The notes below the pieces were generated by a model. It was not told the DNA's origin. It did no database searches and saw only the letters and a list, made by a program, of their open reading frames with translations. This document shows, one piece after another, positions 20,341 through 58,452 of a DNA stretch of 64,000 nt. Origin of the DNA: Octopus bimaculoides (Eukaryota); the NCBI RefSeq assembly GCF_001194135.2, contig NC_068984.1, positions 16,746,757 to 16,810,756 on the forward strand, in the 5' to 3' direction. The position numbers and the translations under genes were made by a program. Position 1 is the first letter of the stretch; every line of letters begins with the position of its first letter.

Positions 20341-20396
<56 letters not shown>

Positions 20397-21146: not shown

Positions 21147-21223
21147 CTTCTTCAGTGTATTTTTACCTCCATTAGCCAAAGCCAATGCAACAAAATTCAG
21201 ATTCTGGCAACCAAAGCATGGAG
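21147..21223 (+). CDS. RELN: Reelin exon 5 (repeat 4B)
   Basis: gttcttcag acceptor, G|gttagt donor; FFSVFLPPLAKANATKFRFWQPKHG; phase 2 to phase 1. Confidence 0.92.
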
Positions 21224-21492
21224 GTTAGTAACATAATTTATAATGCAGAAATACGATGTCAATTTGTTGGTTTGTTTTTTTGTTTCTAATTTTAATCTTT
21301 TAACAGTTTGTATGTATGATGAATTGTAGTAGAGTATAAAAATAATTATTTAGTAGTTTATTGAACAAATGAATATTCTTACAGTAGTTATTTTTCAGTT
21401 AGCAGAAAATTTTCTGTCATATAACGTGGTAAAATATTTCTTTAAAAAATATTTTCATAAATTGTTTTTACACATTCATACACACACTCACA

Positions 21493-21523
<31 letters not shown>

Positions 21524-22386
21524 GTGTGTATGTATCTACATATGTGAGTATCTATGTATGTGTGTATGCATCAATGTATGAATGTGAGTATAGGCATGTA
21601 TACATACATGTGGTATGAGTGCATATATATGTATGTTTATACATATATATATGAGAGAGAAAGACAGAGTGAGCAATAGTTAAGTACCATCCAAGGATAT
21701 ATATGTAAACATGGGTTTGTGAGTGAATAACTTAAAAACTGTTGTGGTTTATAATATATCATGTTATTAATGTTTTGTGGAAGTTCATCTGCTAGTTTTG
21801 AAGTTATCTCTATTAAAACACAAAGAAACAAAATCTAACTTTCCTAAGCATGTTGACTCAAAGAAGGTAATGATTTAAGACATTTTCAGTGAAATATTTA
21901 TCACACGTCTTAAAATATTTTCTAATATTAAACAAAGACTACAACAGTTGACACCAAATTTAATAATAGCTACTAAAGTCAAAACTGCAGTATTTTCTCA
22001 ATGTGTTCATTCACATAATTTAGCTTTAGTTCAAAAGTTAGATACTTTTTAGCAAATTTGGTGTGTTTACCAAGATACAGCATGCTGCCAATAGCTAGGG
22101 TCACATAGAATTAATTCCAATATCAACAGGGATATCATGTTTTGCATTATCAGCATATTCAACTAGACTGGTTCAATAAGCTGATAGGTAAAACCTGAAG
22201 TCCTTGTTGACTCAAATGTTATGGTAAATTTGACTCTATTCTCAGGGTTGAGTCACCCTATTTATATATATATTCCATTGTTATTCTTAAACTAGCTTTA
22301 AAATTATAATCCTATTTAGCATTTTCAATATTAAAATTTTTTTCTTCAAGAATTCAAATGAAATTGTTTTGTTGACTTTGTTATAG

Positions 22387-22549
22387 GTTCAATGAAGTCA
22401 ACATGGGCAATAGATAACTTTTTTGTTGGAACTATGACACTCAACCCAAACATGCTTGATGACAAATTTGAAAAACCATCATTAGATCAAGGTCTGTGGC
22501 AGTTTTCAAACAATGGAAAACTTGGGTCATATTGTGAATTCAGCAGACG
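22387..22549 (+). CDS. RELN: Reelin exon 6 (repeat 4B/5A junction)
   Basis: ttatag acceptor, CG|gtacgc donor; SMKSTWAIDNFFVGTMTLNPNMLDDKF...GSYCEFSR. Confidence 0.94.
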
Positions 22550-25236: not shown

Positions 25237-25351
25237 GGAAAGCACTCGAACTGCAGGCAGCTCAGCTTTGGTATTCAAAAGGGGAACTGGAGAACATTCT
25301 ATTGTTACGAGAGATTTGGATATTGGACCTATGTCAGTTGTGCAATTTGAT
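25237..25351 (+). CDS. RELN: Reelin exon 7 (repeat 5A)
   Basis: ttacag acceptor, GAT|gtaaga donor; ESTRTAGSSALVFKRGTGEHSIVTRDLDIGPMSVVQFD. Confidence 0.94.
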
Positions 25352-27870: not shown

Positions 27871-28091
27871 ATCAATGTTGGTTGTGGTGCCAGTTCAACT
27901 CACAAATATCCTGTACGTCTGGAATATTCTGTAAATGGTGGTAAAACATGGCAGTTGATTGTTCCTAATTGTGCTGATTATGCTTTGGCTCGTTGTGATG
28001 ACCAAACACAACCAACATCGATATATTATTCTGGCACAACCAAATATTGGAGAAGAATTATCATTCCTTTAGATGGACTTCATGCTTGTGG
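27871..28091 (+). CDS. RELN: Reelin exon 8 (repeat 5A)
   Basis: attctgtcag acceptor, GG|gtatga donor; INVGCG...PVRLEYSVNGGKTW...YYSGTTKYWRRIIIPLDGLHAC. Confidence 0.95.
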
Positions 28092-30879: not shown

Positions 30880-31169
30880 TGCTATTCGCTTCCGTTGGAC
30901 ACAAGGATACATTCCTCACTTTGACTATGCCCCAGAGTGGGCTATTGATAATGTGTTTATTGGAATGATGTGCCTTAGTAATTGCAATGGACATGGAAGT
31001 TGCGGGAGCTCAATGTTGTGTGAATGTGATGAGGGTTATGGAGGAGACAGCTGCACTCCCCTCCAACAACACCCCACCTCTATGAAAGAAGAGTTTAAGG
31101 AACCAGTGCTGGGTGGATCAAGTGCAGTTCGAGATTACTTTCAGAAACCATCTTCACAGTTGCTTGAAG
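30880..31169 (+). CDS. RELN: Reelin exon 9 (repeat 5A end, whole EGF, 5B start)
   Basis: poly-T...aaacag acceptor, G|gtaact donor; AIRFRWTQG...WAIDNVFIGMMCLSNCNGHGSC...CECDEGYGGDSC...MKEEF. Confidence 0.95.
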
Positions 31170-31240
31170 GTAACTGATACACTGTATTTGGAATTTATTG
31201 TGAATACTGCTTAATTACAGCATATATTTGTGTACATGTA

Positions 31241-31293
<53 letters not shown>

Positions 31294-31452
31294 ATGCATG
31301 TGTGTGCATATGTATGTGTTTTCTGGTACATACCTGAACAATGAAGAAAGTGTATTGTATGTGCTCATATGTATAATGTTGTTAATGTCACTGTTGTAAT
31401 TCACTCTATATTAATAATAATTATGTTACATTCTCCTTATGTTCTCTAACAG

Positions 31453-31609
31453 CACAAACTGCATTGGATGAGAAAAAATGGTCTATTTGGAGCAATGGCC
31501 GTATTACACCTAAAGAGTGTGGTCTTTTAATCAGAGGTGCAAGTCTGTACTTTGGAGAAAATGGTGACAGAGTTCTTATTAGCAAAGACCTAGATTTGTC
31601 TCGTGTCAG
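31453..31609 (+). CDS. RELN: Reelin exon 10 (repeat 5B)
   Basis: ctctaacag acceptor, AG|gtagaa donor; QTALDEKKWSIWSNG...CGLLIRGASLYFGENGDRVLISKDLDLSRV. Confidence 0.94.
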
Positions 31610-33727: not shown

Positions 33728-33986
33728 TATTGTTCAATTCTTCCTGCGACTTGGTTGTAAAGCCTCTCCTCCCAGCACAGGTACCCCTCCAGTGTATGTC
33801 CAATATTCAGTCGATGGTGGAATTACATGGCATACCTTTGAGCAATTTGACTTTTCCTATGAAAGTAACAAACCTGAATACATTGTTCTTCATCTGCCTG
33901 AGAAAGCTCGAACAAATTCTACCCAGCTGCAATGGTGGCAGCCATCAACCGATGGTACTTTCACTGAACAATGGGCAGTCGATCAG
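33728..33986 (+). CDS. RELN: Reelin exon 11 (repeat 5B)
   Basis: ctttcag acceptor, CAG|gttggc donor; IVQFFLRLGC...VQYSVDGGITW...LPEKARTNSTQLQWWQP...QWAVDQ. Confidence 0.94.
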
Positions 33987-36087: not shown

Positions 36088-36229
36088 ATTTATGTTGGTG
36101 GAGATATTGATGGCACTGAAATGCTTCTGGATGAACCAACGATTCCTCAAGACACAAACTGGCTGCTTTATCCTGGAGGAGAAATTAAAAAAGTCTGTGG
36201 GTCTGTTACAGATGCCCTCTCCTTTGAAG
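36088..36229 (+). CDS. RELN: Reelin exon 12 (repeat 6A start)
   Basis: tgtgcag acceptor, G|gtatac donor; IYVGGDIDGTEMLLDE...NWLLYPGGEIKKVCGSVTDALSFE. Confidence 0.94.
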
Positions 36230-36249: not shown

Positions 36250-36501
36250 CACTGGTTCTCAACAGGGGTTCATATGACCCTTAGAGATCCATATAAGATT
36301 TTGTTATTAAAACTTATGTACAATAAATTGGTTATAATTCTACTATATGCAAAATATTTTAACAATTTTTTTGTACAACTGATAATATCTAATTAAAAAG
36401 AATGTTATAGGATTTTTTAAACATCAAATGTCTATGAAGATCCATCCGAGTAAAATAGAAATCAGTGGGGTCCATAGGTGAAAAATGGTCAAGAACCATT
36501 G
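36250..36501. mobile_element. hAT-like MITE (CACTGGTTCTCAAC...AAGAACCATTG), 8-bp TSD
   Basis: ttttacat / ctttacat flanks; related element 55566-55907. Confidence 0.7.
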
Positions 36502-36879
36502 CTTTACATTTTTGTGGTTGATACAGAAATACAACATGAGATGATGTTTTTGTTTCTATGCATTTGGAATGGAATTGAATAATCTCAACAGGTTTCACAG
36601 TTTAGGAGCCATTGTCTGCATAATATTATAAAATTTATCTTTTTGGAATTTTAAATTAAATTGTTAGCTGATGGACTCTGGAACAGGAAACACATCTTGT
36701 AAAACATTCTACTGACATCTGTGAAGGTGACATTCATAATAGAATGGATTTATATTGACCCACAAGTGAGATTTCTAAGTAAAAAAATATTAAAATATTT
36801 TAATATCCAAGTTGGAGCCCAATAATTGTAAAGAGGATAATTAGAGATCATGAGGTCTTCATTTTACATTGTAATATTG

Positions 36880-37090
36880 TTATTTTGTTGTCATGGATTA
36901 GTCCAGCTCAGCTTGGATCAAACAGACCTATAAATCAAAGACATTCCAACCATGACACATCATCCTTTTGTATATCCTACACTACAAGGTTCCTTTTTTT
37001 TTAAACAGTAGGGTGTGATTTGAGGGAGATTCAGTTGCTACTTTTATCAGATTAAACTATATATAGACTCCATTGTTGGCTTCAGAACTC
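36880..37090 (-). repeat. Old interspersed repeat family F (SINE-like 3' part)
   Basis: Shared CTAGAAATAGC...AAATCACACC...GTCATGG.TGGAATGTCTTTGATC; other copies 17140-17300+, 29195-29405+, 33560-33680-, 42124-42245-. Confidence 0.6.
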
Positions 37091-37782
37091 CCCTCGCTAT
37101 TGTTGTCCTAACTAATACGCATTACTTTATCTTAATCTACCTCTAAATTGAAATATTTTGCCACTCCTATAACTTTGTGGCTATCCCGAGGAAGAATATC
37201 TAGTGTTTGATGAATATATTTGTTTAAGCAAGTCAAAATTTTTGTTGCATTGATGGTGTGCAAATGTCCTAACTCTCCAGGACATCCCCTCATTAACAAC
37301 TCAACAGGACTGTTGTAAATCAAAAGCAATCGAAAGCTTAATACTTTTATCTCCTCTTTTATGTATCTCTAGGGCAATTTTTTTGAAGTGCTTAAAATGC
37401 TTATTAAACATACAAGTCTTGGTGGAATAAAGACTTGTTTCTTCTTTTTATTTCCCAATGGTCATCTTTCCTACTATTAATGAATATAAATTATTTTAAT
37501 ACAAGCATATTTTGTAGATGTTGACAAGTCATATAATTTCTTTCCACTACCAATTTCACAAAGTATCCCAGTATTTACTGGTCTATTTTTAAGTTCATTC
37601 TCACATCTCTGCCATAAGAATCAGTAGTAGAATAGATATAAACGAAGCTAATTCTTTTCTTAAAGATGTGATGATGATCAAGTTTGTTAATGTTAAAATT
37701 AAATTGTATTTTTTTCTTGTCATGAATCTCTAATAAATCATACTTTTTCTTTATGCTAATATTAAATACAAATCTTTTCAAG

Positions 37783-37890
37783 ATGAAGGTAATATGAGGT
37801 ATGCAATATCCAGAGATGTGACCACCTATTCGGGGGCATTCATTCAATTTGAACTTTCAATGGGTTGCAAAGACACTAAACAATGCTATG
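37783..37890 (+). CDS. RELN: Reelin exon 13 (repeat 6A)
   Basis: cttttcaag acceptor, G|gtaagt donor; (D)EGNMRYAISRDVTTYSGAFIQFELSMGCKDTKQCY; phase 1/1. Confidence 0.93.
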
Positions 37891-40800
37891 GTAAGTTTAA
37901 TATTCTTTTATCAAATTCGGTTACATGTTATAACTTCTATTTCTGCTCTATTCAATTATAATGTATCATTAATATACTCAATATATCATTTAACATATTG
38001 TATAATATACCATATATCATTAATAAGCAATATACCATATAAAATACCACAAATGTACCATATACTTAGGAATGATATACACACTATTCAAGTCCACTTT
38101 CTTGGATTTGCCCTTCTTAATATTATAAATCATAGCTAAAATTAAAAAGGACCACTTAATGATCTGGGTGTGTGTATAGTTTGGTAATAATAAGCAGATT
38201 CCAAGGTAGAGTAATTGTGGATAATTACTTTACATTGCAAAGCAGACAAGCTTGAATTAAATAAAACTGACCTATCAATAAAAAGTACATATTCTCCCTG
38301 CAGCTGAAGTTACTGTTGTAATATAAACTCATCGTCTATGTTTGTCAACTAGAGCTATGCTATTCTGAGCAATCAGTGTTGGATTGGGACTTAGATTTTA
38401 TTAAATCTATTAAGTAGCTATCGTATTAGCAAATTATAGCACCAATTAAATTCCGTGCTTTGAAAACACTTAGAGATTCTCAGCTCTCATAAATACCAAA
38501 GAGCTATCATCACACAAACACCCTTTCTTTTCTTTATGTGAATTATTAATAACCTTATTCAATCCTTCTCAGAAGACATAACCATACTTTGTTTAAATCC
38601 TGTCTTGTCTTCTGTTAATATCAAAAACACCTAACAGCTATCTATGTTTTCCCCATCAACAATGATCTCCCATATATCCTCTCACAGAATATGACAATTT
38701 AATGATATTTAGCAATATGCGGTGTTGAGTCAATCTCTTATTTCTCATGAATATTAATCAGTTTAAAGGTTTCCATTCACAAGATTCCTGTATTAACTAT
38801 CTGAGATCTATCTTATGTTCTCAACCATACCGAAATTGCATAAGCAACACTTTATATTCTCTTGAGAGCTAAAATATATTTCATCTTTAGTCATTATTTT
38901 CTCTCTTCAAAGCTTAAATATATTTAAAATGTTCATCCTCTTTAATCATTTAAATATTAAGAAGACATTTTAAAAAGATGTATTTGCATTATTAATAAGG
39001 TTTGCTGAAAATGTTTGCTTGCTAACATTACAGATATCTTGTTTCTATTTCAAGAGAAAAATCAACAAACCACACACTAACTCCCCACCAACCCACTTGT
39101 TTTTTATTATTTATTACCCACGCTCTATTCTCCTTCCTAAAGACTTTCTGGAAGTATAAATGCAGTCCATTATTCCACTAAACTTGTCAAATTCCATCCT
39201 TGTCCATGTGTTTCTAAACCAACTTTCAAAATTTCAAAATTTCACATTAATTGCATCAGTCTTGCATGTTTTAGTATATTTTGGTGGACTTAGACAGTGA
39301 GCTGACAGAATCATTAGCACACCAGGCAAAACGCTTTGCAGCATTTCATATCTTTACATTCTGGGTTCGAATTCTGCCAAGGTCAATCCATTCACATTAT
39401 TTTACCTTGTGGATATGCCTTTACACTTTGTCACTAACATCTTTATTTCTCTTGTCAGAGCCATCCCAAGTACTCCTACACACTCTTATCTAATATGAAG
39501 TAGCTATGTATCCCCTCCACAGCAACAAACCTGTTCTTGTTGCTTTTATCTTACTTTAATATCTTAACACCTAGCATAAAGCTTCCTCTCTTTGTCTACT
39601 ATTTTGCCCCCCACCCCATCCCCCACTTTGTCGAGGGTGCTTTTTAGTCTTGAAAGTTACATGGCGACCTCACTGTGCTAGGGTCACAAAAAAGGCACCC
39701 GGGACACTCTGTAAAGTGGTTGACATTATGAAAGGAATCCAATCATAGAAACCATACCAAAGCAGACATAGGCACATGAGGCAATCCTTAAAACTGTTAG
39801 ATCATGTCAAACCACCCAACCCATGCCAACATGGAAGACACATAGATGATGATGATGATGATGATGACGGTCCCCATGGACAGAATTGATTAAAATAATA
39901 AACACTTACCATTGTGATAAATGAAGGTAATGGCTAAAAGAAATCTCAATTCAAAGAAAGCAAATTTGAACTCTCAAACATTCCAAAGCTGATTTTAAAA
40001 TGTTCCATAGCAACAGCTAAAGCTATTTAACAACTCTTGCTATCGCATTTATATAACCTAATCTGGAATAGCAGCTGTATTGCAGATCAATAGTAGAAGT
40101 TGAACAGACCCATAATTCATTAGATTCCATGTGGAAATTATTATCTCTGCTTTGGGAAAAATGTAAAAATCTCACCTCTATATGTTAAAATAGTGAAGGT
40201 CATATTCATCCAGACATCTTAATGACCAAACTCGATATTGTAAACTTAATTACAGCAGTTTTTCTAGCAACTGTTGATGAACAGTTACACAACAGAAATA
40301 ATTTTTTTATATAATTCCTCAAATAACGTTTTCATCATGAAGTAAATTTGATGCTATTCTCTGTACAAGAAGTATGTATTTCAAAGTGGAAAACCAGAAA
40401 ACTTCATAGAACTAAGTGCTGAAGGCAAAGAATGTCTTTTTCATCATTCGTTGTGTGGTGTATGCATGCGAGTAGATGTAATCGCCTTACCTCGGTTTTC
40501 CTTTCGTCGACTGCGAGTCTGTCTTGCAGTATCCAATCCTTGAAGCTTGCCCCGACCCAAAGAACACTAGGAATAGCAGCTGCTTCTCCCAAGCCTAGAC
40601 CGTCGCTTAGCACGTCTTCTCCTGACCACAACCCCGTTCGAAAAGGGCATGAATCCCGATCGAGGCTCCCTCTGCCCTTCTTCCTCTTCCGGTCAACTCG
40701 CCCTTCTGGTCAGCCTCCCCAGTCACTGACGTCATACCACACGTTGAAAGTTCATGACCAGCTTTATTATGCTCAAGCTGTTTTCAGAAGCGAGTGCCTA

Positions 40801-41575
40801 GCATCAAGTACTCTTACCATCTCTCCACTCATTGATGAGCCATGAAGGAAAGACAAGTCATTATGTTCACAGCATCCATGAATCCACAGGGGGTGCCAGA
40901 TATTGGTTAAGTATAACCATACATATCTGCTTTAGGGTCTCTCCTACAGGATTTTCTGTAGGGGTTTACTCACTTAACCTTCTTTTAAATGCTCAATAAA
41001 TAACACCACAAGGCAGCAGAGGTTTGAATTAGGAATTATCCTCATCCTAGACAGATGTCCCTGGAGAGGTGTAATGGGCCATATCTACTTGTGTGTGTGT
41101 GTGTGTTTTCAGCAGATGACAAATGGTAATATCCTTAATGCTTTAAAGGGCCTCTGAAACTGATAAGTTATTCACAGACTGGAAACTTGGTCCAAATACT
41201 TAGACCAGAATCAAAACCATGGAGACATCCAAGAGCAGGCATGATATCTCCAATAATCTTCCACACAGTTTAGTTCTAATTTAGGAAATTTGACTCACAA
41301 CATTGGACTGACTCCTGTGCAGGTGGCACATAAGAAACACCATTTGAGTGTGGCCGTTGCCATTACTGCCGGACTGGCCCTCGTGCTGGTGGCACGTAAA
41401 AAGCACCCACTACACTCTCTGAGTGGTTGGCATTAGGAAGGGCATCCAGCTGTAGAAGCTCTGCCAGATCAGATTTGAGTCTGGTGTAGCCATCTGGTTC
41501 GCCAGTCCCCAGTCAAATCATCTAATCCATGCTAGCATGGAGGGCGGACGTTAAATGATGATGATGGATTTGGCC

Positions 41576-42184
41576 AATGGGTGTTCAAACTGGAAAATGT
41601 TCTGGATACATAATATCAGAAAAGAAAATTGGATGGTAGAAGATACTTTCCTAAGGTGGTATGCAGTTGGGAATCAAACTTAGTACCACTTAACTGAAAA
41701 GCGAATTTAACTATGCTTGAACCCAAGGTGTATTATTACAACCTGAACATAGATAGCACTGCAATGCTTTTTTATAGATAATACTCTATGTAGTTTGTTT
41801 TATCTCAAGAGAGTCATTATGCCAATAATAAATACACACTGGTTCTATTTCAATTCTGTTATTATTTGTCAATTTGTTAACATTTAACAAACAAACTAAT
41901 CAATTGTTTGATTAATCAATCAATCAGACAGGTTTATCACAGTCCTCCTGTCACCATCTGTGACCTCATCAATGAGATATTCTCTCAACTCCAAGTAGCT
42001 GTCTGTCTAAGTGTATTACAGCATGTCTATTTTTTACACTGGAGAGGAAGCATAACAACCAGAATTGTTTATCTTCAGCTCATTCTTGTTTTATGTAACT
42101 TACCAAAGACTTTTCAGTCTAGCCCATCCAATTTTCTTTTCTGATATTATGTATCCAGAACATTTTCCAGTTTGAACACCCATT
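41576..42184. repeat. Perfect 61-bp inverted repeat, 487-bp spacer
   Basis: 41576-41636 is the exact reverse complement of 42124-42184. Confidence 0.95.
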
Positions 42185-42701
42185 TTAAGACGATAGGATA
42201 TGATTTAGGGAATAACAGCTGCTGTTTCTAGCAGATTTAGAAACTGAGTATAATCAGTATTGGCTCAACCAGAATTATTTGATAAACTGGTTAAACTGGT
42301 TTATTTTCATTAGCATTAGTTTGTAATGCTAATAAAAATCTTATATGATTTTACTGCTTCTGGATTCTACCTCAAATATAATTAATAGTTCTCTTAAATT
42401 ATAAAATAGAATATTATCAAGTACTTGTGACATGAAACAAAAGCCAAATGCTCTGTCATTGACAATAGATCTTATAAATAAAAGAATTCTGACTTACATT
42501 TATCAAAAATTAAAATATGAACAGCTGCTTAAATCTTACAATATTACTATTCAGCAAGATTATTGTCTTGCAAAAATACATTACAACTGCTCTAATATAT
42601 TCTTTATTTAGTTCAATTATGTAACTGAAATCTCATCTCAGATTTGTGTGCATATGCATGTGCATATATGTATGTATGTATGTATGTATGTATATAGGTC
42701 C

Positions 42702-42740
<39 letters not shown>

Positions 42741-42749
42741 GTATGTATG

Positions 42750-42802
<53 letters not shown>

Positions 42803-44597
42803 AATATGTATATATATATATACTTATTTTGTTGTCATCTTTTGCTGAACTACTAAGTTACAGAGATGTAAACAAACCAACACTGGCTGTCTAGCAGTGG
42901 GGGAAGACAAACATACACACAATGGGCATCCACAGTTTCTGTCTACCAAAATTCACTCACAAGGCATTGGTCAACACCCAGGGCTATAGTAGAAAACACT
43001 TGTTGAAGTTGCTGCACAGTGGAGTTGAACCCAAAACCACATGCTAGCAAAGCAAGCTTATTAATCACACTGCCATGCCTATCTGTTTCATGGAGATGAT
43101 TATTTTTACGTTTGGCTCTTGGGGAAGGAACAATGCTGGTAGCCTTCATAGACCTTCTGAGATCAGTGAGATTGATGGCATTAATATTCCACTTAAACTA
43201 TTTCAAGTCTTCATCTACAAGAAAGACATGTATAGGAAGGTAGTTACAGTTAACCAATGTTCTGGAATGGAAGAAGTAGAAGTTATGGCTATTACAGGAC
43301 TAGTTGGGCTAGAAGCAACAAGAGTGATGACAGGAGGAGAGACATGCGAGAGGAGTCTGGGAGAAGATAGTACAAGGCCAGCCAGATCCAAGAAGCAGAG
43401 GCCATTATAGTAGTGGGAGAAAAGGCAGGACTAAGCAACAGGCTCTCAGTGGGTCAGAGACTGAGACATATTTTTGAGTGGCTTTATGCTTATCAATCAC
43501 GTGACTGTAACGAAGGAATATTTGATTGGTTGACAGAACTAAAATCTGTATGAAATTCAAATACAAAAATATTTGAGTCGTACAGTTTGCATGAAGCATT
43601 GCCTGGTATATACCTTCCATCTGCTTGTTTCAGTCATTAGACTGGGGCTCTAACTTGAAGAATTTTTTAGTCAAATGAACTGACCCCAGTACCTATTTTC
43701 TTTTTTAAGTCTGGTACTTATTCTATTGGTCTCTTTTGCCAAACTACTAAGTTATGGTGACATAAACACACCCACACTGGTTGTCAAGCAGTGGTGGTGG
43801 ACAAACACAGACACAAACATGCACACACACATAATGGGCTTTTTTCAGTTTCTTTCTACCAAATTCACTCACAAGGCTTAGGTTGTCCTGTGGCTATAGT
43901 AGAAGACACTTGCCCTAGGTGCCATGCAGTGGGACTGAACCCAGAACCAAATGTTTTTAATTATTATAGTTTTCTGTAAAGTCAAAATAATGCAAGTTAC
44001 AAGAAATAATATATGTCAATGATTTGTACATCCTGAAGACGGGGTTCTAACCCTGACATATTGCAGCAGCAAATTAAAGTACAAGCTATCGACTAGTATT
44101 ATTTCTAATAGCTTGCATTATTTTGGCTTTATAAAAAATAAATAATAAAAATATTTTCATAATTAACAATAAAGCTTTAGGTGTTTTTATTCAATAAACA
44201 CTCACAACACCCAGTCTGGGAATTGAAACAACAATCCTACGACCGCGAGTCCACTGCCCTAACCACTGGGCCATTGCACCTCCACACACATACACACACA
44301 CACACATCATCATCATCATCATTGTTTAACGTCCGCCTTCCATGCTAGCATGGGTTGGACGATTTGGCTGAGGACTGGTGAACCAGATGGCTGCACCAGG
44401 CTCCAATCTGATCTGGCAGAGTTTCTACAGCTGGATGCCCTTCCTAACGCCAACCACTCCAAGAGTGTAGTGGGTGCTTTTACGTGCCACCGGCACGAAG
44501 GCCAGTCAGGCAGTACTGGCAACGGCTACGCTCAAAATGGTTTTTTTTACATGCTGCCTGCACAGGAGCCAGTCCAGCGGCACTGGCAACGACCTCG

Positions 44598-45633
44598 CAT
44601 ATATGTTGGACACATAAGAGGTGCAGCAACATCAAAGGCAGGTTAACTAGCAAGTTAGTTTTTGTTTGTGGCAGATGTTCAGGTGCAATAAAGACTGCAA
44701 ACAAACAGGAAACAACTTCTATCTCATTCCAGGGTGAAAAACTAGAGGTAGTCGATAGCTTCCGCTATCTGGGCGACCAAGTTAGTAGTGGGGGTGGGTG
44801 CGCTGAAAGTGTAGCTGCTAGAATAAGAATAGCCTGGGCAAAGTTTAGAGAGCTCTTACCCCTGCTGGCGACAAAGGGACTCTCACTCAGAGTAAAAGGC
44901 AGACTGTATGACGCATGCGTACGAACAACCATGCTACATGGCAGTGAAANNNNNNNNNNNNNNNNNNNNNNNNNNNNNNNNNNNNNNNNNNNNNNNNNNN
45001 NNNNNNNNNNNNNNNNNNNNNNNNNNNNNNNNNNNNNNNNNNNNNNNNNNNNNNNNNNNNNNNNNNNNNNNNNNNNNNNNNNNNNNNNNNNNNNNNNNNN
45101 NNNNNNNNNNNNNNNNNNNNNNNNNNNNNNNNNNNNNNNNNNNNNNNNNNNNNNNNNNNNNNNNNNNNNNNNNNNNNNNNNNNNNNNNNNNNNNNNNNNN
45201 NNNNNNNNNNNNNNNNNNNNNNNNNNNNNNNNNNNNNNNNNNNNNNNNNNNNNNNNNNNNNNNNNNNNNNNNNNNNNNNNNNNNNNNNNNNNNNNNNNNN
45301 NNNNNNNNNNNNNNNNNNNNNNNNNNNNNNNNNNNNNNNNNNNNNNNNNNNNNNNNNNNNNNNNNNNNNNNNNNNNNNNNNNNNNNNNNNNNNNNNNNNN
45401 NNNNNNNNNNNNNNNNNNNNNNNNNNNNNNNNNNNNNNNGTGCGGGTGACACGTAAAAGCACCCACTACACTCTCTGAGTGGTTGGCGTTAGGAAGGGCA
45501 TCCAGCTGTAGAAACTCTGCCAAATCAGACTGGAGCCTGGTGTTGCCATCCGGTTTCACCAGTCCTCAGTCAAATCGTCCAACCCATGCTAGCATGGAAA
45601 GCGGACGTTAAACGATGATGATGATGATGATGA
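44598..45633 (+). mobile_element. Young 5'-truncated RTE-type LINE spanning a gap
   Basis: Open frame WTHKRCSNIKGRL...DSFRYLGDQVSSGGG...WAKFRELLPLL...TMLHGSE; 3'UTR ends ...GGACGTTAAAC(GAT)n. Confidence 0.9.
44950..45439. other. Assembly gap (N run) inside an RTE LINE copy
   Basis: LINE ORF on left, LINE 3'UTR on right. Confidence 1.
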
Positions 45634-45864
45634 TATATACATATGCGTCAGACATTTCCCATCTCTAAATGAAGAATTAAAATATTTTACTATAGTTTTG
45701 TACTTGCATGGCAAGACCAAACGATTTCTCTGCAGTTTTCTGAGGACTAATGCTAAACCAAATAATACCAGCTATATTTTCCTTGAATTTGAAATAAATT
45801 CTGTTTATGAAATCTATGATCAATAAAGATTTAATGAGCAATGTTTAACTTATCTTCTTTTTAG

Positions 45865-46033
45865 GTATGGATCTTCAGTTTTCTCTGGATATGGGAGTCA
45901 CATGGGAACTTTTTCAGACTGCCTGCACTCCTTCCGATATAGACTGTGCCAGCTATCATCAGAGCAGTCGATTTATGTCTGATATTTACCATGGATGGAA
46001 TAGAATTACATTGCCTGTCCCTTATTATGCAAA
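45865..46033 (+). CDS. RELN: Reelin exon 14 (repeat 6A)
   Basis: ctttttag acceptor, AA|gtaaga donor; MDLQFSLDMGVTW...CTPSDIDCASYH...GWNRITLPVPYYA. Confidence 0.94.
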
Positions 46034-46290
46034 GTAAGACAGCAATATCTTTTTAACATTTTTGTTTTGTTTTTTTTAACTTGTTTCAGCCATTGAACTG
46101 TTGCCAAGCTGGAGCACTGCCTTGAAATGTTTTAGTCAAACAGTGCTCTCTTTTTATTTCATGTCTGGTATTTATTCTATCAGTCTCTTTTGCTGAGCTG
46201 CTAAGTTACAAGGACATAAAAAAACAAAACCAGTTGTCAAGTGTAAACACAGGCTCAAAATGTACACACACTTATCTGATGGGCTTCCAC

Positions 46291-46477
46291 CATTAGCATA
46301 GCTAGTGGGGGGTGCCTTAGGGGCAGTTCGCCCTGGGCAGTTCACCCTGGGCAGCCCTTTCAGTGGGGCACCACTTTTGAGTCTGCTGTAGGGAATATGT
46401 GTTTTTTTTTTTGTGGTTTCAGGGGGTGGAAAACAGAAGGGCTGCCCTGGGTGGCACACACTCTAGCTATGCTAGTA
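46291..46477. mobile_element. hAT-like MITE nested in SINE-B, 8-bp TSD
   Basis: TIR tagcatagctag / ctagctatgcta; flanks gcttccac / gcttccat. Confidence 0.7.
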
Positions 46478-49012
46478 GCTTCCATACAATTTCTGTCCAC
46501 CAAATCCACTCACAAGGCATTGGTCACTCTGAGCCTACAGAAAACACTTGCCCAAGGTGTCATATAGTGGAACTGAACCTGAAATCACTTAGGTGCAGAG
46601 TGAGCTTCTTAACCACACAGCAATGTTTTCAAAAGAAAAGAACACTAATTTCAGAAATTATAACAAAACACATGAAGTATTAGATTAAATTGAATTTTGT
46701 ATGTATAAATTTTAAAATATATTTCAATTTTCACATTGGTAAAACTTGACATTTTCAATTCTCTGTCATCATTTGCTTCTCTGTTCAGTACAAAAAACTT
46801 ATTTTTCAGACTAGTCATACCTTGAACTCAGTACAGGTTATAGAGCATATTCTTTTCTCATTTAATGGGATCCTTCTGGCAACAATAGAATGTTAGTGTC
46901 TGAACAATCATATCATGCTAGAAACTCTGAGTAGCTATTGATTGTGTCACCAGCTTTGTGCAAATATATTTACTCTATCTACTTTTCTATATATTACTCT
47001 ATCTATGTCCCTCTTGAAAACATCTTTTTTCTTTCTTTTCCTCTTACTGATCTTGGTGTTATTTCTATTAAATAATTTGTTATACATATGACTAGGTGGG
47101 AATGATTTATTAATTTGTGTTTAGAGGTTGCTGGAAATACTTGATCTTATTTAAGCTAAAGTAATGGATGAACCAAATTATATTCTATTTTCTACATATT
47201 ATATTCTGTTTTCAGCAATTACTGCTCTTTCTTAAGAAATTGATCTCATCTTTATATTTGCATTTACTTAATGTCCCATAATAATAACTGACAGTTTTAT
47301 CAAATGTTAAATTATCTGTTTAAATGTTAAATATTCTTTTATTTATGTTACTGATTTACAAATATACCTGTAGGGTGGTTGAAATCTTTATCAGTATACA
47401 TAAGGTTTTCATTCAGTTTTCTGTAAAGTCAATGTCTATCTGCCAACAGGTAACATCTAAAAAGTTGACTGATATTAGTGGTTATTATGGTGTTGAGGCC
47501 AAGTTCATTCAAACGTGCTTATTGGGGCTATTTTAATCTTATCTAACTTTCAGCTAGTCTTGTGTGAAAATGCAAAACCATCATCCCTATATAAACCTGT
47601 TTTTTTAAGGTTTTAAATATACTTTTGAATATATCTAGAATATGTAATCCAATTGTGAAGACACATGGTTTAATGGTTAGAGTATTTGGCTCACAATCAT
47701 AAAGTTGTAGGTTCAATTCCTTGACTGAGTGGCACATTGTATTCTTGAGCAAGGCACTTCATTTTATATTGCTTTAGTTTACTCAGTTGTAAGGAGTACT
47801 CCTATCTGTCACATCCTAAATGTTCCACTGGATCAAGGATGAGGGGACTGAGAGGGTGTCTTATGTTTACATAAACACCTAAAACAAATAGTGAAAACAT
47901 GATACATGTTACCAAACCATACTCACTAGTGAATGACAGCTGGCTATGTTATCTAATCAAATCACATACCTTAGCTTCATCAAAGTTCTCCATCCTTACA
48001 TCAACAAAATAGGGCTTTTCTGACAAACAATTATATCTACATTATTGCTGTTGATAATGAATGTTTCTTGCCAAATCCCAGTCGTCTGTTGAAGAAAGGG
48101 TTGGAAATTGATGGATACAATTCAACAATGTCAAAATATGAGAACCTGAATTTACTATTAAACCAACCAACTATATTATTATTCTGGTTCCACAGTTGCC
48201 AGTTGATGATTTTTCAAATATTTTTGCAGATATTAAGTAAAATCTATTTTCTAACTACACTAAATTTGTTCTTTACCAAGAATATAACACTGCTCATGGG
48301 GTTAACTGTGAAATTATCTTTGTGGTCTTTGAAGGTGGTGTATTTTTACATTTGGTTAGACATTCTATCTTCTTATTACACTTCAGGCAAGTAACAAAGA
48401 TGTTTCAATATCATAGGTGCTACTATTGTTTGTGTAATGTCGTTTGTTGGAAGTCTGCTGTAGTTATCTATATCTAGTTTATATATAAGTTTAAAACTTT
48501 ATCAAAAAATGTGTATAATTAAAGATGTTGAATTGTCAAAAGCATTAGAATACAGTAGAATACAGTAAATAGAATGTCTCACTCTATACATTCTGGATCT
48601 CTACACTCTGATTTCAAATCTCACTGAGATCAACTTTGCATTTCATCTTTCAAGGGTCAATAAATAAAGTACTCTAGCAAGGGCAGTGGATTGGTAGAAA
48701 TCTTAGAAGCACCCATGCTGGTGTTGTGTAGAAAAGCACTTGTTCAGGGCCACATAAAAAGTGCCTGCGCTGGTTCCACATAAAAAGCACTCATGCCAAG
48801 GCCTCACAAAATGCACCGGTGTTGGTGCCATGTATAAAGTATCCATGCTGGTGCCACGTAAAAAGCACCCAGTACACTCTGTAAAGTGGTTGGCATTATG
48901 AAGGGCATAACATAACCATGCCAAAACAGACAATCGGAGCTTGAGTAGCTCTCTAACTGGCCAGCTCCTATCAATCCATCCAACTTGTCAGACCACCACC
49001 AGCATGGAGAAT

Positions 49013-49597
49013 CTTTTCTACTCTTGGCACAAGGCCCGAAATTTTGGGGGAGAGGTCAGTCAATTAGATCGACACCAGTATGAAACTGAGCTATGTCTCC
49101 AGCAGAACCTCCATCTGAAGTGGTTTAACAGAGTACCAAACACCGACCTGAGGGAAAGGGCCAACCAGGAGCCCATACATGTTCAGATTAGATGAAGGAA
49201 ATGGAGATGGATCGGATACACACTGCGGAAAGAACCCTCAAATGTGACACGACAAGCACTTGACTGGAACCCACAGGGGAAAAGGAAGCGAGGACACCCA
49301 AAGCAGACATGGAAGCGGAGCATTTTGGACAAGTTCAGGACCAACGGCCTGACGTGGGAAGGAGCCAAGAAACACGCCAATGACCACAAAAAGTGGAAAA
49401 TAACTGTTGAGGCCCTATTCTCCACAAGGGGCAAAAAGGATTAAGAGAGTATGCAACTAGTACTTACTTTACCGACCCTGAAAGGATGAAAGGCAAAGTC
49501 AACCTCAGCAGAATTTGAACTCAGAACGTAAAGACAGATAAAATACTGCTAAGTATTTCACCTGGTGTACTAACATTTCTGCCAGCTCACCGCCTTG
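49013..49597 (-). mobile_element. SINE-A (tail 3) interrupted by RTE fragment; 14-bp TSD
   Basis: ccagcatggagaat at 48999-49012 and 49598-49611; decayed tail-3 copy at 50695-50915+. Confidence 0.88.
49083..49447 (+). mobile_element. RTE LINE 3' fragment inserted in a SINE; 6-bp TSD agtatg
   Basis: WRWIGYTLRKEPSNVTRQALDWNPQGKRKRGHPKQTW; agtatg at 49077-49082 and 49448-49453. Confidence 0.85.
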
Positions 49598-50920
49598 CCA
49601 GCATGGAGAATGGACATTAAATGATGATATTAGAGCAAAGGACAAGATTCGTTGTGGTAATGGTTTTGGCTATTTGCATTTTGAATTCAAATTCTGCTAA
49701 TGGCCAGGCTATATCACCCAACAAAGGAAATATCCTGTTCAAACTGGCATTTGACCAGCTTTGGTAGGTAGGCCCACTACAAGCTTAGATCAAGCTGACA
49801 ATGTTATAATGAAACTTTCACCCAACAATAGATTGACCATGGCTGAATAGTACAACTAAGCACTGTGTATAAGAAGCTCATTATTATCAACATTTGACCT
49901 TTGGGTATCATAAGAAGAATCATTGAGACTTGGTCTCTGGTCTGAGAATAACTTCCTTCCTTCTTCATACTAGTCTTGGAGCCCCTCCAAATGGTCATGG
50001 TTGCTGCACTTCTTCCTGTGGGTAAATCATAAAAAATTAAAATATGTATTGTAATCTTATATGCTATTCAATCCATTGATATTATTGATTTCTAAGTTAG
50101 CCCAGAATTTTATGGGAAAAGGAGAGTAGCCATTATTGCTATGGCTACACATGTGGTACAAACGGTTATTTCCTGGCTATCAATTTATACAGTTCAAAAT
50201 GAATATTGATTTTTATTGATGAAAACTTTCTCCAATTAAATTATTTAATTATGCTAGATGTAATTAAGGTCAGGCTCACAGATATAAAGTATAACAATGC
50301 CAGTGTTTCTGGTAAAGTTCCATAAAGACTTTCTCAATTGACATAATAATAGGGAAATAGTTTTTCTCACATTTTCTATTCCACTTTGTTGTTCTATAAT
50401 TATTCTTTAATGATAGTTTTTGAATTGATAGTGAGAGGAACAAGATATTCAAATGCCAAAACTTGCTTTTTCAATCCATTAAACTTTCTTAACAACTTCA
50501 ACAAAAGCCAGTAAAATACATGTTGGAAAAATCTGAAATACGTAGCAAATAACAAATTTTATATTTGTCACTAAATTCATTCTGCTACACTATCATTATT
50601 ATTATTATTATTGTTATTTGTCCAACCCATGCCAGTATGGAAAATGGACGTTAAATGATGATGCTGATAATGATGACAACAATGATTTTCAGGACACTGA
50701 ACTGCTAGAATCGTTAGCAAGTCAGACAAATTGCCTTGTGACATTTCATCTACCTTTACATTCTGATTTCAAATGTCAACTTTGCCTTTCATCCTTTCAG
50801 GATCAATGAAATAACTATCAATCAAGCAATGGGATTGATGTAACTGTTTAGTCCCCCTTCCCCACAATTTCAGGCCCAATGCTTATCACAGAAAGAATTA
50901 TGATTATTATTATTATTATT

Positions 50921-51478
50921 GAGTGAGAGAGCACTGCATGCCATCAAAGTGACACTGGGGTAAAATATACGAAGCCCAGTACACCCATCATGACTACCCA
51001 TCTGATAAGAGTATACCAGGCACATGCATCACAACCTTATGTGTGCAACATAATGGTCTCATATCAAGATAAACAGCGCATGACCTTGCAGGTGAGGGCC
51101 CAGTTAGAATTTTCTTCATGTTGAGTAACCCATCCCACTCAAAAGGTCCTTGAATAAAGGTTGTTTGAGGATGTCGAACGAAATACCCATGTTTCCAAAG
51201 ATGAATTATCCAAACCCCAAAGAATTCCTCTCAACACATGGCTATGATGCTCCCCCACTACTTCTGCTCATGATCAGAGATGCACATATCGTCAGCCACC
51301 AAGGGACATGCTCAACTGGTTACGGTCGAACAACTGACAAGCAAATCTGTGGTTTTGAACAGAATATTTGCTGTAGCCCATCTTTTATACCAAGACAAAA
51401 CAATATACATGATAGCACCTCCAATCAGTTAAGATAAGAAGCCATGAGAACCACTGTCTGATGCCACATCAGGGCATT
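50921..51478 (-). repeat. Unclassified ~550-bp insertion bounded by (ATT)n on both sides
   Basis: GC-richer block with sharp edges in ATT microsatellite; no convincing ORF; repeat status inferred, single copy here. Confidence 0.5.
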
Positions 51479-51769
51479 TTATTATTATTATGATTAAGGG
51501 GGTAAATGACAACGAAGATGATGGTGATGATATATATATATATATATATATCATCATCATCATCATCATCATCATCATCGTTTAACGTCCGCTTTCCATG
51601 CTAGCATGGGTTGGACGATTTGACTGAGGACTGGTGAAACCGGATGGCAACACCAGGCTCCAATCTAATTTGGCAGAGTTTCTACAGCTGGATGCCCTTC
51701 CTAACGCCAACCACTCAGAGAGTGTAGTGGGTGCTTTTACGTGTCACCCGCACGAAAACGGCCACGCTC

Positions 51770-52378
51770 NNNNNNNNNNNNNNNNNNNNNNNNNNNNNNN
51801 NNNNNNNNNNNNNNNNNNNNNNNNNNNNNNNNNNNNNNNNNNNNNNNNNNNNNNNNNNNNNNNNNNNNNNNNNNNNNNNNNNNNNNNNNNNNNNNNNNNN
51901 NNNNNNNNNNNNNNNNNNNNNNNNNNNNNNNNNNNNNNNNNNNNNNNNNNNNNNNNNNNNNNNNNNNNNNNNNNNNNNNNNNNNNNNNNNNNNNNNNNNN
52001 NNNNNNNNNNNNNNNNNNNNNNNNNNNNNNNNNNNNNNNNNNNNNNNNNNNNNNNNNNNNNNNNNNNNNNNNNNNNNNNNNNNNNNNNNNNNNNNNNNNN
52101 NNNNNNNNNNNNNNNNNNNNNNNNNNNNNNNNNNNNNNNNNNNNNNNNNNNNNNNNNNNNNNNNNNNNNNNNNNNNNNNNNNNNNNNNNNNNNNNNNNNN
52201 NNNNNNNNNNNNNNNNNNNNNNNNNNNNNNNNNNNNNNNNNNNNNNNNNNNNNNNNNNNNNNNNNNNNNNNNNNNNNNNNNNNNNNNNNNNNNNNNNNNN
52301 NNNNNNNNNNNNNNNNNNNNNNNNNNNNNNNNNNNNNNNNNNNNNNNNNNNNNNNNNNNNNNNNNNNNNNNNNNNNNN
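51770..52378. other. Assembly gap (N run)
   Basis: N run between LINE 3'UTR and (TA)n(GA)n. Confidence 1.
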
Positions 52379-52421
<43 letters not shown>

Positions 52422-53529
52422 GGAAGGAAAGTAGAGAAGTAAGAAGCACGGGGGCAGTGACAAGTGACCGAGACCTTTGACAATATACCTGTCAAGCCAG
52501 GTGAAATCATAGTCATGGCCGATGCCTGTGTCACATATCTGGCACAGAAAAGGCACCCTTTGAACTTTGGGCCTCAAGCCAAGTGAGGTCATAGTCATGG
52601 CTGATGCCGGTGTTTCATAACTGGCACCCATACCAGTGGCACCCACCACACTCTTGGAGTGGTTGTTGTAAGGAAGGGCATCTAGCCGTAGAAACCATGC
52701 CAAATCAGATTGGAACCTGATGCAGCTCCCCAGCTTAACAGTTTTCAGTCAAACTGTCCAACCCATGTCAGCATGGAAAACAGACGTTAAATAATGCGGA
52801 TGATGATAAGGATGATATAAAACAGGTTTCCATACAGTTTCTATCTACCAAATTTATTCACTAAATCATTGGTAAGCCCCAAGGCTAGTAGCAGATATTT
52901 TTCTAAGGTATCGCGGTGTGAATGAACCTGAAACCACATGATTGGTAAGTGAACTGTACTTGTTTAGCAAGTAATTTAATCTGAAATACCATGTTGAAGC
53001 TAAAAATAATCTCATTGTCAAAGACGTATTCTAGCTATTTAAAATACACATATTTTGTTAAGTTCACTTTTCCTCTTTTATTATTTTATAACCTGAATAA
53101 TAATAATGTGTAATTATTGTGTGTCAGTTTGTTTTGTTTTTTTATTATAAATTTAAGTTGCTTAACAGGTGATGAGGAGCTTGTTTCCTTGGTTTTATCT
53201 GTTTTTGCTTTGTACATGTATTGAATGAAATATGAGTCTCTATAATGTGAGAACAAAAAACAGTTGTTTCTGATACTCTGCTTCACTATTGAATACAATT
53301 TATCTTTATTATGCGATGTAGTAAAAGTGCATGAAGTGCGAATAACAGTTTATGTGCGTCTACAACAAACACATATACCCACATTCTCATACAGACACAC
53401 ATACACTCACTTGCATGTATACTCACACAGGCTCACACATGCACACACAAACATATACATGCATAAAATCCATTATCATTACATCCGTCTTTTCATACTT
53501 GCATTAAGGTGAACAGAATTTTTTCACCA

Positions 53530-54665
53530 CAGCATCTCTTCACTTGACTTTGTCGTTCATCTTCTCCTTTGTGAAGCTCAGCATTTTAAGAATATCTTTC
53601 ACCAGTGTCTTCCTTAGTCTTCCTCTTTCACATATTTTTCCCATTTGAATCACTTGGAACTTCTTTGCCCAACCATCATACTTTATAGACATCACTTAAC
53701 CATACCTGTGCAGCTCCATCTCTTGTACACTACACTAAATTCCTCTTAACCTCAGTTTTTCTCTCAGTTGATTTGTGCTCCACCACTCATAAACATTATA
53801 CAACCAATGATACATACTCCCTTCATTTCTTTCCATCTTTCACACATCCTTCACACTTTTTACCTGCAGTTCCCAATCACACAGTCATCCATATGTTTCA
53901 GTATCATAGTCCCTGTCATCTTCTCTGTGAGTCCCAACGTCTGTAGATCCTTTCTCACCACTTTGTCCCACATCTTCCTGGGCCACCCCTTCCACAATTA
54001 GAACTCAGCATTTCTTGATGCATCTGTCTTCATTCATACACATCACATGACCAAACCAGCACAGTCTTCTCTCTTGCGCACGATATCTGATGCCTCATAC
54101 ACCCAGTTTTTTTCTCAAATCACTTACACTCTATCATATATGCACATTGACATGACCCATCCAGCAGAGCATACTGGCTTCATTTCTTTCAAGCCTTCAC
54201 ATATCCTCAGTAGTCACAGCCCATATCTCACTGTCATGTAGCATAGCTGTTCGTACACAGGCATCATACAACCTACCTTTCACTCAGCAAGAGAGGCCCT
54301 TCATTACTAAAAGGGGTAGTAGTTCTTTGAATTTTGCCCAGCCTATTCTTATTATAGCAGCTATGCTTTCAGGACAACCTCCCCTACTATTAACTTGGTC
54401 ACTTAAGTAACACAAACTGTCTACTACTGCTAAGGATCCCCACTGACATTTGAGGGAGTCTATTTTTTTGGTACATTTCTGGTGATTAATATACCTGCAT
54501 ATCTGCCACACATAGACTACTTTCTTTGTTAGTCTTCCAGTGATACTGCTGCACCTCTTATGCATCCATTGCTTGCACTGGGTACACCTTATGGAGTTTC
54601 TGCTGACACCTTTTCTACATACTGAGCAAGACCATCTCCCTGAAGAGATCTGTGATTTGTCTATT
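53530..54665 (-). mobile_element. Decayed RTE-type LINE fragment, same family as 6307-7552
   Basis: WSCSVCRKGVSRNSIRCTQCKQWMHKRC...WAKFKELLPLL. Confidence 0.85.
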
Positions 54666-55079
54666 TTCCTACTTATCAATACTTTACTTTGGTCTGCTAA
54701 ATTAACTCTAAGGTCATTTGATTCCAGTCACAGAGAGAGGTGGGGGGTTGAGGTAATTATGCAGATAAACAAATTAAAACTATAACAGCTTGGGTATGAT
54801 ATACAAAATATGTATTCATGCAAACAGAAAGAAAGCAAAGACTGAAGACTTTCAGATGGATATTTAACTATAAATATATAGACATTTATACATATAAATA
54901 GTTCAAACTTACACAGAGTACAAAACGACAGAGAAAATTAAAGGGGAAGAAGTAAGGTGTTATAATTCCAACAGCTGTTTCTGGGGGCTTGGAGATCCAT
55001 CATAATGTTGGTGGATATAATTCACCAAAATATGCAGCACATAATGGAAACAAATAAACATTGTGTGTGTGTGTGTGCG

Positions 55080-55552
55080 CATATACTTTTTGTGTCTGGC
55101 ACCCATGCCAGTGGAGCGCTAACAGCACCATCCGAGCGTGATCATTGCCAGAGCAGCTGTCTGGCTTCTGTGCTAGTGGCACGTAAATAGCATCATTTGA
55201 GTGTGATTGTTACCAGCGTCGCCTTACTGGCACTTGTGCCCGTGGCACGTGAAAAAACATTTGAGTGAGGTCATTGCCAGTGCCACTGGACTGGCTCCTG
55301 TGCAGGTGGCATGTAAAAAACACCATTTTGATCGTGGCCGTTGCCAGTACCGCGTGACTGGCCCTCATGCCGGTGGCACGTAAAAGCACCCACTACACTC
55401 TCGGAGTGGTTGGCGTTAGGAAGGGTATCCAGCTGTAAAAACTCTGCCAAATCAGATTGGAGCCTGGTGTAGCCATCTGGTTTCACCAGTCCTCAGTCAA
55501 ATCGTCCAACCCATGCTAGCATGGAAAACGGATGTTAAACAATGATGATGAT
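55080..55552 (+). mobile_element. RTE 3'UTR-derived element with tandem ~60-bp units and (GAT)n tail
   Basis: GGCGTTAGGAAGGGYATCCAGCTGTA...CAACCCATGCTAGCATGG...GTTAAAC(GAT)n. Other copies: 6020-6245+, 15310-15530-, 24150-24460+, 32560-32740-, 39630-39870+, 41310-41567+, 44305-44597-, 48700-49630+, 51551-51769-, 52430-52810+, 58565-58710+, 59770-60000+. Confidence 0.85.
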
Positions 55553-55958
55553 AATCTATGTATATCTGTGGTTCTCAAACATTTTTTATCTATTTTTTTA
55601 TCTTTGATTACAATTCCATTCTAGTGGACCATTATAGTTATTTGATGTTTAAAAACTGGTTTGATAGATACTTCTGTAAAAATTCCTGTTTTGTTATTCA
55701 CACATTATTAACTTGTGTAGATTGAGCTATGTAAAACATTTGTGAAAGAAACCCATCTGTTTCTTGCAATAAACATCTAAGGCAAAATTTTTTCATGGAC
55801 CCTTAATATACTACTATGGATCCCCAAATTACTATTTTGTTTGCATGGACCCCAAAAATCACATATAGAATCCCTGGGGTCATATGGATTCTGGTTCAGA
55901 ACCATTGATCTATGTAAAAGATCACTAACTATATGGAAACTTTTATATTTCTGTCCAG

Positions 55959-56099
55959 ATCCAAGTCAACAAGATTCCGTTGGATCCAACATGCTCCTTT
56001 CAATAAACAGCATCATTGGGCACTTCGAGTGCTCTACATTGGCAAAAGATGCCCTCAGTTATGCAGTGGTCATGGTAATTGCATTGGACATGTTTGCAG
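55959..56099 (+). CDS. RELN: Reelin exon 15 (repeat 6A end, EGF start)
   Basis: ctgtccag acceptor, AG|gtaagt donor; SKSTRFRWIQHAPFNKQHHWALRVLYIGKRCPQLCSGHGNCIGHVC; 141 nt, phase 2/2. Confidence 0.95.
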
Positions 56100-57165: not shown

Positions 57166-57346
57166 ATGTGATAGTAATTGGCAAGAAGAAGACTGCCATA
57201 AACCAAAGAACCCACTGCCAACCATTCTGAAAGACTCTTTTATGGACGCAGACATATCAGCTCAGAATTGGTTAAAAATTGCTGGAGCAAAGATAACTAA
57301 TACTTGCACAAATCTAGCCTCAGGAATGGCAATACATTTTATTGGA
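57166..57346 (+). CDS. RELN: Reelin exon 16 (EGF end, repeat 6B start)
   Basis: ttatag acceptor, GGA|gtaagt donor; CDSNWQEEDC...LPTILKDSF...NWLKIAG...CTNLASGMAIHFIG. Confidence 0.95.
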
Positions 57347-58258: not shown

Positions 58259-58452
58259 GGCTGCAGTCGAATTCTCATCAGTACAGATTTAGATTTGAGA
58301 GATTCAAAATTCATTCAGTTCTATTTCATGTTTGGTTGCAACACAGCTCCCCTGATTCGAAACCAAGGGGTCCTTGTTGACTATTCAGCAGATGGTGGTA
58401 TTTCTTGGTCCCATATAACAGAACTTTACTACAACCAATACAAAGCACCAAA
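58259..58452 (+). CDS. RELN: Reelin exon 17 (repeat 6B); gene continues beyond window
   Basis: tctttcag acceptor, AA|gtaagt donor; GCSRILISTDLDL...FIQFYFMFGC...RNQGVLVDYSADGGISW...YYNQYKAP. Confidence 0.95.

Follow-up and report, generated by a model that had tools for sequence, protein, structure and literature searches.

The stretch of DNA analysed here (64,000 nucleotides of Octopus bimaculoides, contig NC_068984.1, positions 16,746,757 to 16,810,756 of the forward strand; hereafter the window) contains the central part of a gene orthologous to vertebrate RELN. One of the two lysines, K2467, through which mouse reelin, a brain-patterning protein, binds its lipoprotein receptors (ApoER2/VLDLR) is present in the encoded protein, and a Glu occupies the position of the other, K2360. 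The window is AT-rich (35% G+C) and is interrupted by four N gaps. Reelin-like stop-free stretches of a large multi-exon gene are scattered along its + strand from 13 kb to 58.5 kb. A splice search joined them into 17 exons, all with GT-AG borders, yielding a 976-residue translation with zero stops. These + strand exons span reelin repeats R4A (late part) to R6B in colinear order; the window boundaries fall inside R4A and inside R6B, and the gene extends past the window.

Full-length reelins of the elephant shark (P0003), the acorn worm Ptychodera (P0001) and the horseshoe crab Tachypleus (P0002) were used as tblastn queries. The exons mapped in strict order to residues 1594-2570 of the shark protein, 1632-2632 of the Ptychodera protein and 1627-2594 of the Tachypleus protein. 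The R5-R6 part of the model matched the mouse R5-6 crystal construct 2E26 in a single stretch (667 bits, E about 1e-204), and Pfam analysis detected Reelin_subrepeat-B in six stretches (E 3e-189), together with EGF modules and BNR motifs. Three A/EGF junction exons, at about 15.1, 30.9 and 56.0 kb, mark the tandem A-EGF-B repeats. In a phmmer comparison with the PDB, the R6A repeat scored 231 bits on mouse reelin R6 (3A7Q/2E26), compared to 100 bits on R5. Given the colinear mapping, the Pfam domains and the single-stretch match to 2E26, the gene is a true orthologue of vertebrate RELN (its central part) from a non-vertebrate animal. Judging from its open frame, canonical splicing and exons that are better conserved than introns, we take it to be functional as a reelin orthologue.

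In mouse reelin, K2360 and K2467 both engage LA1's acidic cluster through salt bridges (PMC5452030); the canonical lysine is K2467, which Asp67, Asp69 and Asp71 hold in place (PMC4882317). Replacement of either lysine by Ala disrupts receptor binding, which is also abolished by K2467R (PMC7701066). The exons encoding the corresponding region of the window gene, and the codons at the two positions, are as follows.

36088-36229, + strand: first R6A exon, IYVGGDIDG...DALSFE plus the first base of an Asp codon
37783-37890, + strand: second R6A exon, DEGNMRYAISRDV...KQCY
45865-46033, + strand: third R6A exon, GMDLQFSLDMG...PVPYYA plus two bases of a Lys codon
55959-56099, + strand: fourth exon, which completes R6A and opens the EGF module, KSKSTRFRWIQHAPFNKQHHWAL...GHVC
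37785-37787, + strand: gaa (Glu), the counterpart of mouse K2360; the second R6A exon has this as its first complete codon
56005-56007, + strand: Lys codon aaa at the mouse K2467 (docking lysine) position, in the fourth R6A exon

All four R6A exons have AG acceptors preceded by pyrimidine tracts, and GT donors. The Asp codon ahead of the Glu is split over an intron, as g(36229)|at(37783-4), and the translations around the two sites read DALSFEDEGNMRY and QHAPFNKQHHWALR. In the HMMER alignment the Glu is paired with the K of mouse FIEKASTRY (chain residue 415) and the Lys with that of PFDKQQ (residue 522), so that PFNKQ of the window is aligned with PFDKQ of the mouse protein. The same placement was obtained in MAFFT alignments of 4, 5 and 13 sequences. 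The two sites are separated by 107 residues both in mouse (522-415 = 2467-2360) and in the window model (residues 714 and 821). The E-D-E-G-N-M loop contains neither Lys nor Arg, and the spacing between the L-x-F and R-Y anchors is identical to that in mouse, so no register shift can bring a lysine or another basic residue to the 2360 column.

The initial annotation had read Glu from gaa at the K2360 position and Lys from aaa at the K2467 position, in comparison with mouse peptides. Both assignments were confirmed by HMMER and by the three MAFFT alignments, the translations it gave agree exactly with the exon model, and the mouse peptides it used are correct. It had also named an outcome that would overturn its reading, namely that a real alignment places a Lys at 2360 or shifts the register; neither occurs.

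The overall likeness to mouse R5-6 (2E26; complexes 3A7Q and 5B4X) extends to the A-EGF-B layout, a nearly gapless R6A (about 42-45% identity), K2467 and its loop, C2101 and the BNR/Asp-box motifs. The window protein differs from mouse in having Glu in an acidic E-D-E patch in place of K2360, Glu in place of K2194 and Lys in place of R2193.

Two assembly gaps lie between the codons discussed above, both within introns.

44950-45439, no strand: assembly gap in the intron between R6A exons 2 and 3, the coding sequence being colinear across it
51770-52378, no strand: assembly gap in the intron between R6A exons 3 and 4

The pair of sites might be an artefact, arising from a scaffolding error over the two gaps, from the choice of a wrong exon or acceptor, or from a pseudogene. 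The inner gap edges (45440-45634 and 51559-51753) consist of one element of about 195 bp, resembling a short interspersed nuclear element (SINE), in two inverted copies with 99% identity, so that the contig between the gaps (45440-51769) is flanked by inverted repeats. This SINE-like element is present in at least eight copies in the window (others near 6.3, 41.4, 44.3, 52.6, 55.4 and 58.6 kb), and the assembly broke at the gaps because their edges are copies of interspersed repeats. The middle contig nevertheless bears precisely the single exon that should lie there, in the orientation expected. The codons split over the gaps close in phase (g|gt, Gly, over the first gap; aa|a, Lys, over the second), and no residues are missing across the gaps in comparison with the mouse, shark, acorn worm or horseshoe crab proteins. 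No second or alternative copy of either site exon, as a possible source of Lys, was found in the readable introns.

A further point in favour of an artefact is the tandem in-frame acceptor at 37781-37790 (caag|atgaag|gt): an exon start at 37789, 6 nt downstream, scores almost as well and would remove the Asp-Glu pair. However, neither isoform carries a Lys. The Glu exon was also recovered from an independent assembly of a relative. A 95-residue open reading frame (P0096, Logan assembly) led to contigs L001 and L002, which align to 36497-38038 of the window with 84% nucleotide identity, intron included. The second R6A exon of L001 is 94% identical to that of the window (flanking intron, 84%); there is no difference at the acceptor or in the Asp-Glu-Gly-Asn-Met codons, and both tandem acceptors are likewise unchanged. 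Together with the 17 stop-free, GT-AG-bordered exons and the site spacing of exactly 107 residues, these observations make an artefact appear unlikely, and the probability that we would assign to it is minimal.

To place the two residues in a wider context, the corresponding columns were read in reelin-like proteins of many animals, obtained by a profile-free search of 1.84 billion representatives. The non-vertebrates in this census belong to seven lineages, six of which are readable at the 2467 column and four at the 2360 column.

Window gene: 2360, E; 2467, K
Shark: 2360, K; 2467, K
Snake, bat, sturgeon and hagfish: 2360, K; 2467, not covered
Frog and cobra: 2360, not covered; 2467, K
Acorn worm Ptychodera: 2360, N; 2467, P
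Sea urchin (fragment): 2360, not covered; 2467, P
Horseshoe crab (two sequences): 2360, P; 2467, S, with a Lys one position earlier
Crab Petrolisthes: 2360, N; 2467, not covered
Krill (fragments): 2360, N; 2467, H
Ostracod Darwinula: 2360, uncertain; 2467, E
Nemertean Tubulanus: 2360, deletion; 2467, L

Among the sampled sequences, Lys at 2360 is confined to vertebrates (from hagfish to mammals) and occurs in none of the four readable non-vertebrate lineages. Lys at 2467 is likewise absent from all six of the other readable non-vertebrate lineages, and is kept in the window gene and in a relative, L003, described below. The proteins of Ptychodera flava (XP_070558262), Tachypleus tridentatus (XP_076339324) and Tubulanus polymorphus (XP_074645991), all full-length and colinear with the whole shark reelin (in the case of Tubulanus from shark residue 291 onwards), resemble the window protein in lacking Lys at 2360, but differ from it and from L003 in having P, S and L, respectively, at 2467.

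Since only vertebrate sequences were found to have Lys at 2360, the Glu of the window gene does not appear to be a special or lineage-specific loss. The initial annotation had described it as a replaced lysine, a reversal of charge; as a loss within this lineage this finds no backing, for nothing shows that a Lys was ever present at this column outside vertebrates. Its suggestion that the vertebrate interface arose later finds support for K2360 (present in shark, snake, bat, sturgeon and hagfish; absent from acorn worm, horseshoe crab, crab and krill). The comparison across these sequences suggests instead that the unusual feature of this gene among non-vertebrates is the retained Lys at 2467. 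The rarity of K2467 outside vertebrates had been overlooked, as had the half-basic R5B contact in the same window (see below).

The kept Lys lies in a vertebrate-like APFxKQ..WA loop: the window loop HAPFNKQHHWAL is nearer to the vertebrate QAPFEKQQTWAL than are the loops of other invertebrates, and it equals the shark loop at five of nine variable positions, compared to one to four in the other invertebrates. A second relative was reached through a fragment, P0123, which led to L003, a piece of a 60-kb ENA contig of which only the exons align with the window (71-78% nucleotide identity). Its orthologous fourth exon has the same splice phase and reads SKSTRFRWIQHAPFEKKHSWAL, thus retaining the docking lysine (PFEKK) and the HAPFxK motif despite fully diverged introns. 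Retention of the Lys over this much larger distance argues for constraint and not for accident, and within this clade the docking lysine K2467 and its loop appear to be constrained. The docking loop of L003 (5917-6063) contains two adjacent lysines (PFEKKHSW), and this exon is flanked by introns several times the length of those in the window.

Besides the R6A site, mouse reelin has a weaker second contact, formed by R2193 and K2194 on R5B with LA2 of ApoER2, and mutation of both residues raises the dissociation constant about tenfold (PMC5452030). The positions homologous to this contact, and to the cysteine of the reelin dimer, are as follows.

31512-31517, + strand: Lys-Glu (aaa gag) at the mouse R2193/K2194 positions, the R5B contact with ApoER2 LA2
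28087-28089, + strand: tgt (Cys), aligned with mouse C2101, which forms the intermolecular disulfide of the reelin dimer

Both HMMER and MAFFT placed ITPKECG of the window over mouse KPS-RKCG, so that only the first position of the R5B pair is basic (K-E). The same two columns read D-K in the acorn worm, E-K in the nemertean and S-G in the horseshoe crab. Of the four basic contacts described in the literature, the window protein thus departs from mouse at three, with Glu at two of them. The R5B pair repeats the R6A pattern of one basic residue and one Glu. The dimer cysteine is present: LHACGAIRFRW of the window aligns with mouse LHLCGSVRFRW. The proteins of the acorn worm and the horseshoe crab keep this Cys as well; the nemertean has Ser at this position.

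These contacts bear on a reading in which the Lys at 2467 is unrelated to receptors, invertebrate reelins do not signal via the LDLR family (acting, for example, in matrix or adhesion), and the likeness of the loop reflects neutral retention or chance. The absence of Lys from the six other lineages at this column, the background Lys frequency (4.7% of model residues) and the changes at three of the four contacts, two of them to Glu, are as such a reading would predict. It fits poorly with the persistence of the Lys and the HAPFxK motif in L003, whose introns have wholly diverged, with the five of nine variable loop residues shared with shark, and with the conserved dimer cysteine. On the receptor side, fly lipophorin receptors internalise mammalian reelin and respond to it via Dab (PMC9454125), which indicates that this side of the interaction is old. 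On balance we regard a receptor-unrelated Lys as rather unlikely.

In all ligand complexes known so far, the LA modules display an acidic Ca2+ cage (PMC4882317). In the canonical docking mode of the LDLR family (RAP and others; the Blacklow model, PMC4882317), one lysine enters a tri-aspartate Ca2+ cage and is stacked on a Trp. The window protein offers a docking lysine in the loop homologous to this site. Canonical high-affinity ligands usually add a second basic residue, whereas the homologous position in the window protein is acidic.

The reading that we favour, and hold to be moderately probable, is that the window gene encodes a reelin orthologue with only half of the surface by which vertebrate reelin holds LA1, the first LA module of ApoER2/VLDLR, that the two-lysine clamp is a vertebrate innovation, and that docking, if there is any, uses a single lysine. 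In this proposal (i) the primary docking lysine K2467 and its loop would have been kept, the auxiliary K2360 position being occupied by Glu within an acidic E-D-E patch, and (ii) the full two-lysine clamp would have been added in vertebrates onto an older surface. The clamp is best read as a vertebrate innovation because K2360 occurs only in vertebrates among the sampled sequences. From the residues present, the protein most likely does not bind vertebrate-type LA1 in the high-affinity two-lysine mode; any LDLR-family receptor of its own would probably be bound via single-lysine docking into the acidic Ca2+ cage. Such docking would be aided by the avidity of a disulfide-linked dimer, for which the cysteine is conserved.

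The lack of high affinity implied here would not apply to a compensated interface, in which the animal's own receptor has co-evolved (e.g. so that a basic residue faces the Glu) or the part of K2360 is taken over by a different basic side chain of R6A, so that high affinity is kept with a changed geometry. Conservation of the Glu in the close relative L001, and the recurrence of the pattern of one basic residue and one Glu at 31512-31517 (K-E), would be in line with compensation. Against it, the cage that LA modules display to all of their known ligands is acidic, and the lysines of the neighbouring CKDTKQC are not kept in L001 (CENTEQC). We consider compensation quite improbable. In a comparison of L001 (about 1290-1400) with 37783-37890, four of the six exon differences alter the protein, and three of them, all A/G changes, cluster in this one loop; the CKDTKQC loop is evolving fast and the E-D-E-G-N-M loop is unchanged between the two sequences.

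Several points weigh against a half site of the kind favoured above. The vertebrate-only distribution of K2360 rests on four non-vertebrate lineages, and the census includes neither a named mollusc, annelid or brachiopod orthologue nor a usable amphioxus R6: over R6 the alignment of the leech Helobdella protein is unreliable, and this repeat is missing from the B. floridae model. L001 is readable at the Glu column only and L003 at the Lys column only. At the background frequency given above, a lone Lys is by itself weak evidence. The Lys of the horseshoe crab, located one position earlier in the docking loop, indicates that loop lysines may be movable and that a column-based census may understate their conservation. 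The window contains no receptor gene, and a co-evolved receptor could make use of the Glu.

Two representatives, P0006 (amphioxus) and P0005 (crinoid), were left out of the census, as their models are incomplete or non-colinear and have no usable R6; their best-match residues derive from other repeats. A homologous-protein search with a single-sequence query gave no match even at E 10, and a four-sequence profile brought back nothing but short vertebrate fragments, with no mollusc or annelid among them.

A more far-reaching history can be put forward tentatively. The APFxKQ..WA loop may be an ancestral bilaterian LA-binding site that vertebrates and the present lineage have kept and that has decayed in acorn worms, sea urchins and arthropods. 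Signalling by reelin via the LDLR family would then be pre-vertebrate, having started with a single lysine and dimer avidity, and the K2360 affinity clamp would have been added on the vertebrate stem. We regard this scenario as possible, though doubtful.

Reelin is usually portrayed as a vertebrate molecule, yet databases contain full-length invertebrate orthologues. A 2025 review denies that invertebrate reelins exist, and Manoharan et al. (2015), according to papers that cite them, analysed invertebrate reelin-like genes. A limited literature search found no paper on the receptor-binding lysines of reelin outside vertebrates, and the search for cephalopod reelin gave nothing. What is new here is a residue-level variant within a known family, invertebrate reelin-like genes themselves being already known. 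Since fly receptors respond to reelin (PMC9454125) and invertebrate orthologues exist, when and how reelin gained its receptor site is a real question. On the half-site reading, the window gene would represent a natural intermediate, with the primary lysine present and the auxiliary one absent. If this is true, the complete two-lysine clamp is dated to the vertebrate stem, and the origin of the reelin-receptor interface becomes testable in a simple binding experiment with one recombinant fragment.

The remaining exons of the gene, placed by tblastn and the splice search (the two downstream exons also by alignment), are as follows.

13167-13438, 15080-15220, 16381-16546, 19546-19745, 21156-21223, 22387-22549, 25237-25351, 27871-28091, 30880-31112, 31453-31609 and 33728-33986, + strand: upstream reelin exons, R4A to R5B
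57166-57346, + strand: remainder of the EGF module and start of R6B
58259-58450, + strand: R6B

The upstream exons (13167 to 33986) are colinear with shark residues 1594-2257 in tblastn. The model is less secure at four of its junctions, located in R4B, R5A and R5B (16546|19546, 19745|21156, 22549|25237 and 31112|31453), and the sites discussed above are unaffected by them. Rival donor/acceptor pairs score similarly at these junctions (16546-25237 and 31105-31473), and a short exon has possibly been missed between 19745 and 22387.

The introns are long and rich in repeats; together with the base composition and the microsatellites, this is reminiscent of cephalopod genomes. The left edge of the first R6A gap resembles another repeat, found at 7152-7443 and 54228-54400. 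A repeat-borne fragment of an open reading frame at 54287-54727 (- strand) gave a weak match to a PHD/C1-type zinc finger (Pfam E 2e-5); related copies are present at 7152-7555 and 44650-44949, and the fragment is probably part of an intronic transposable element. No Pfam match was obtained for two retroelement-like open reading frames, at 15805-16224 (- strand) and 49196-49441 (+ strand). The introns also frequently contain GAT-type runs and long microsatellites of the TA/CA type (20.3-20.5, 34.4-34.8 and 42.6-42.9 kb, and elsewhere), whose translations read YIYIY, THTHT or poly-Asp.

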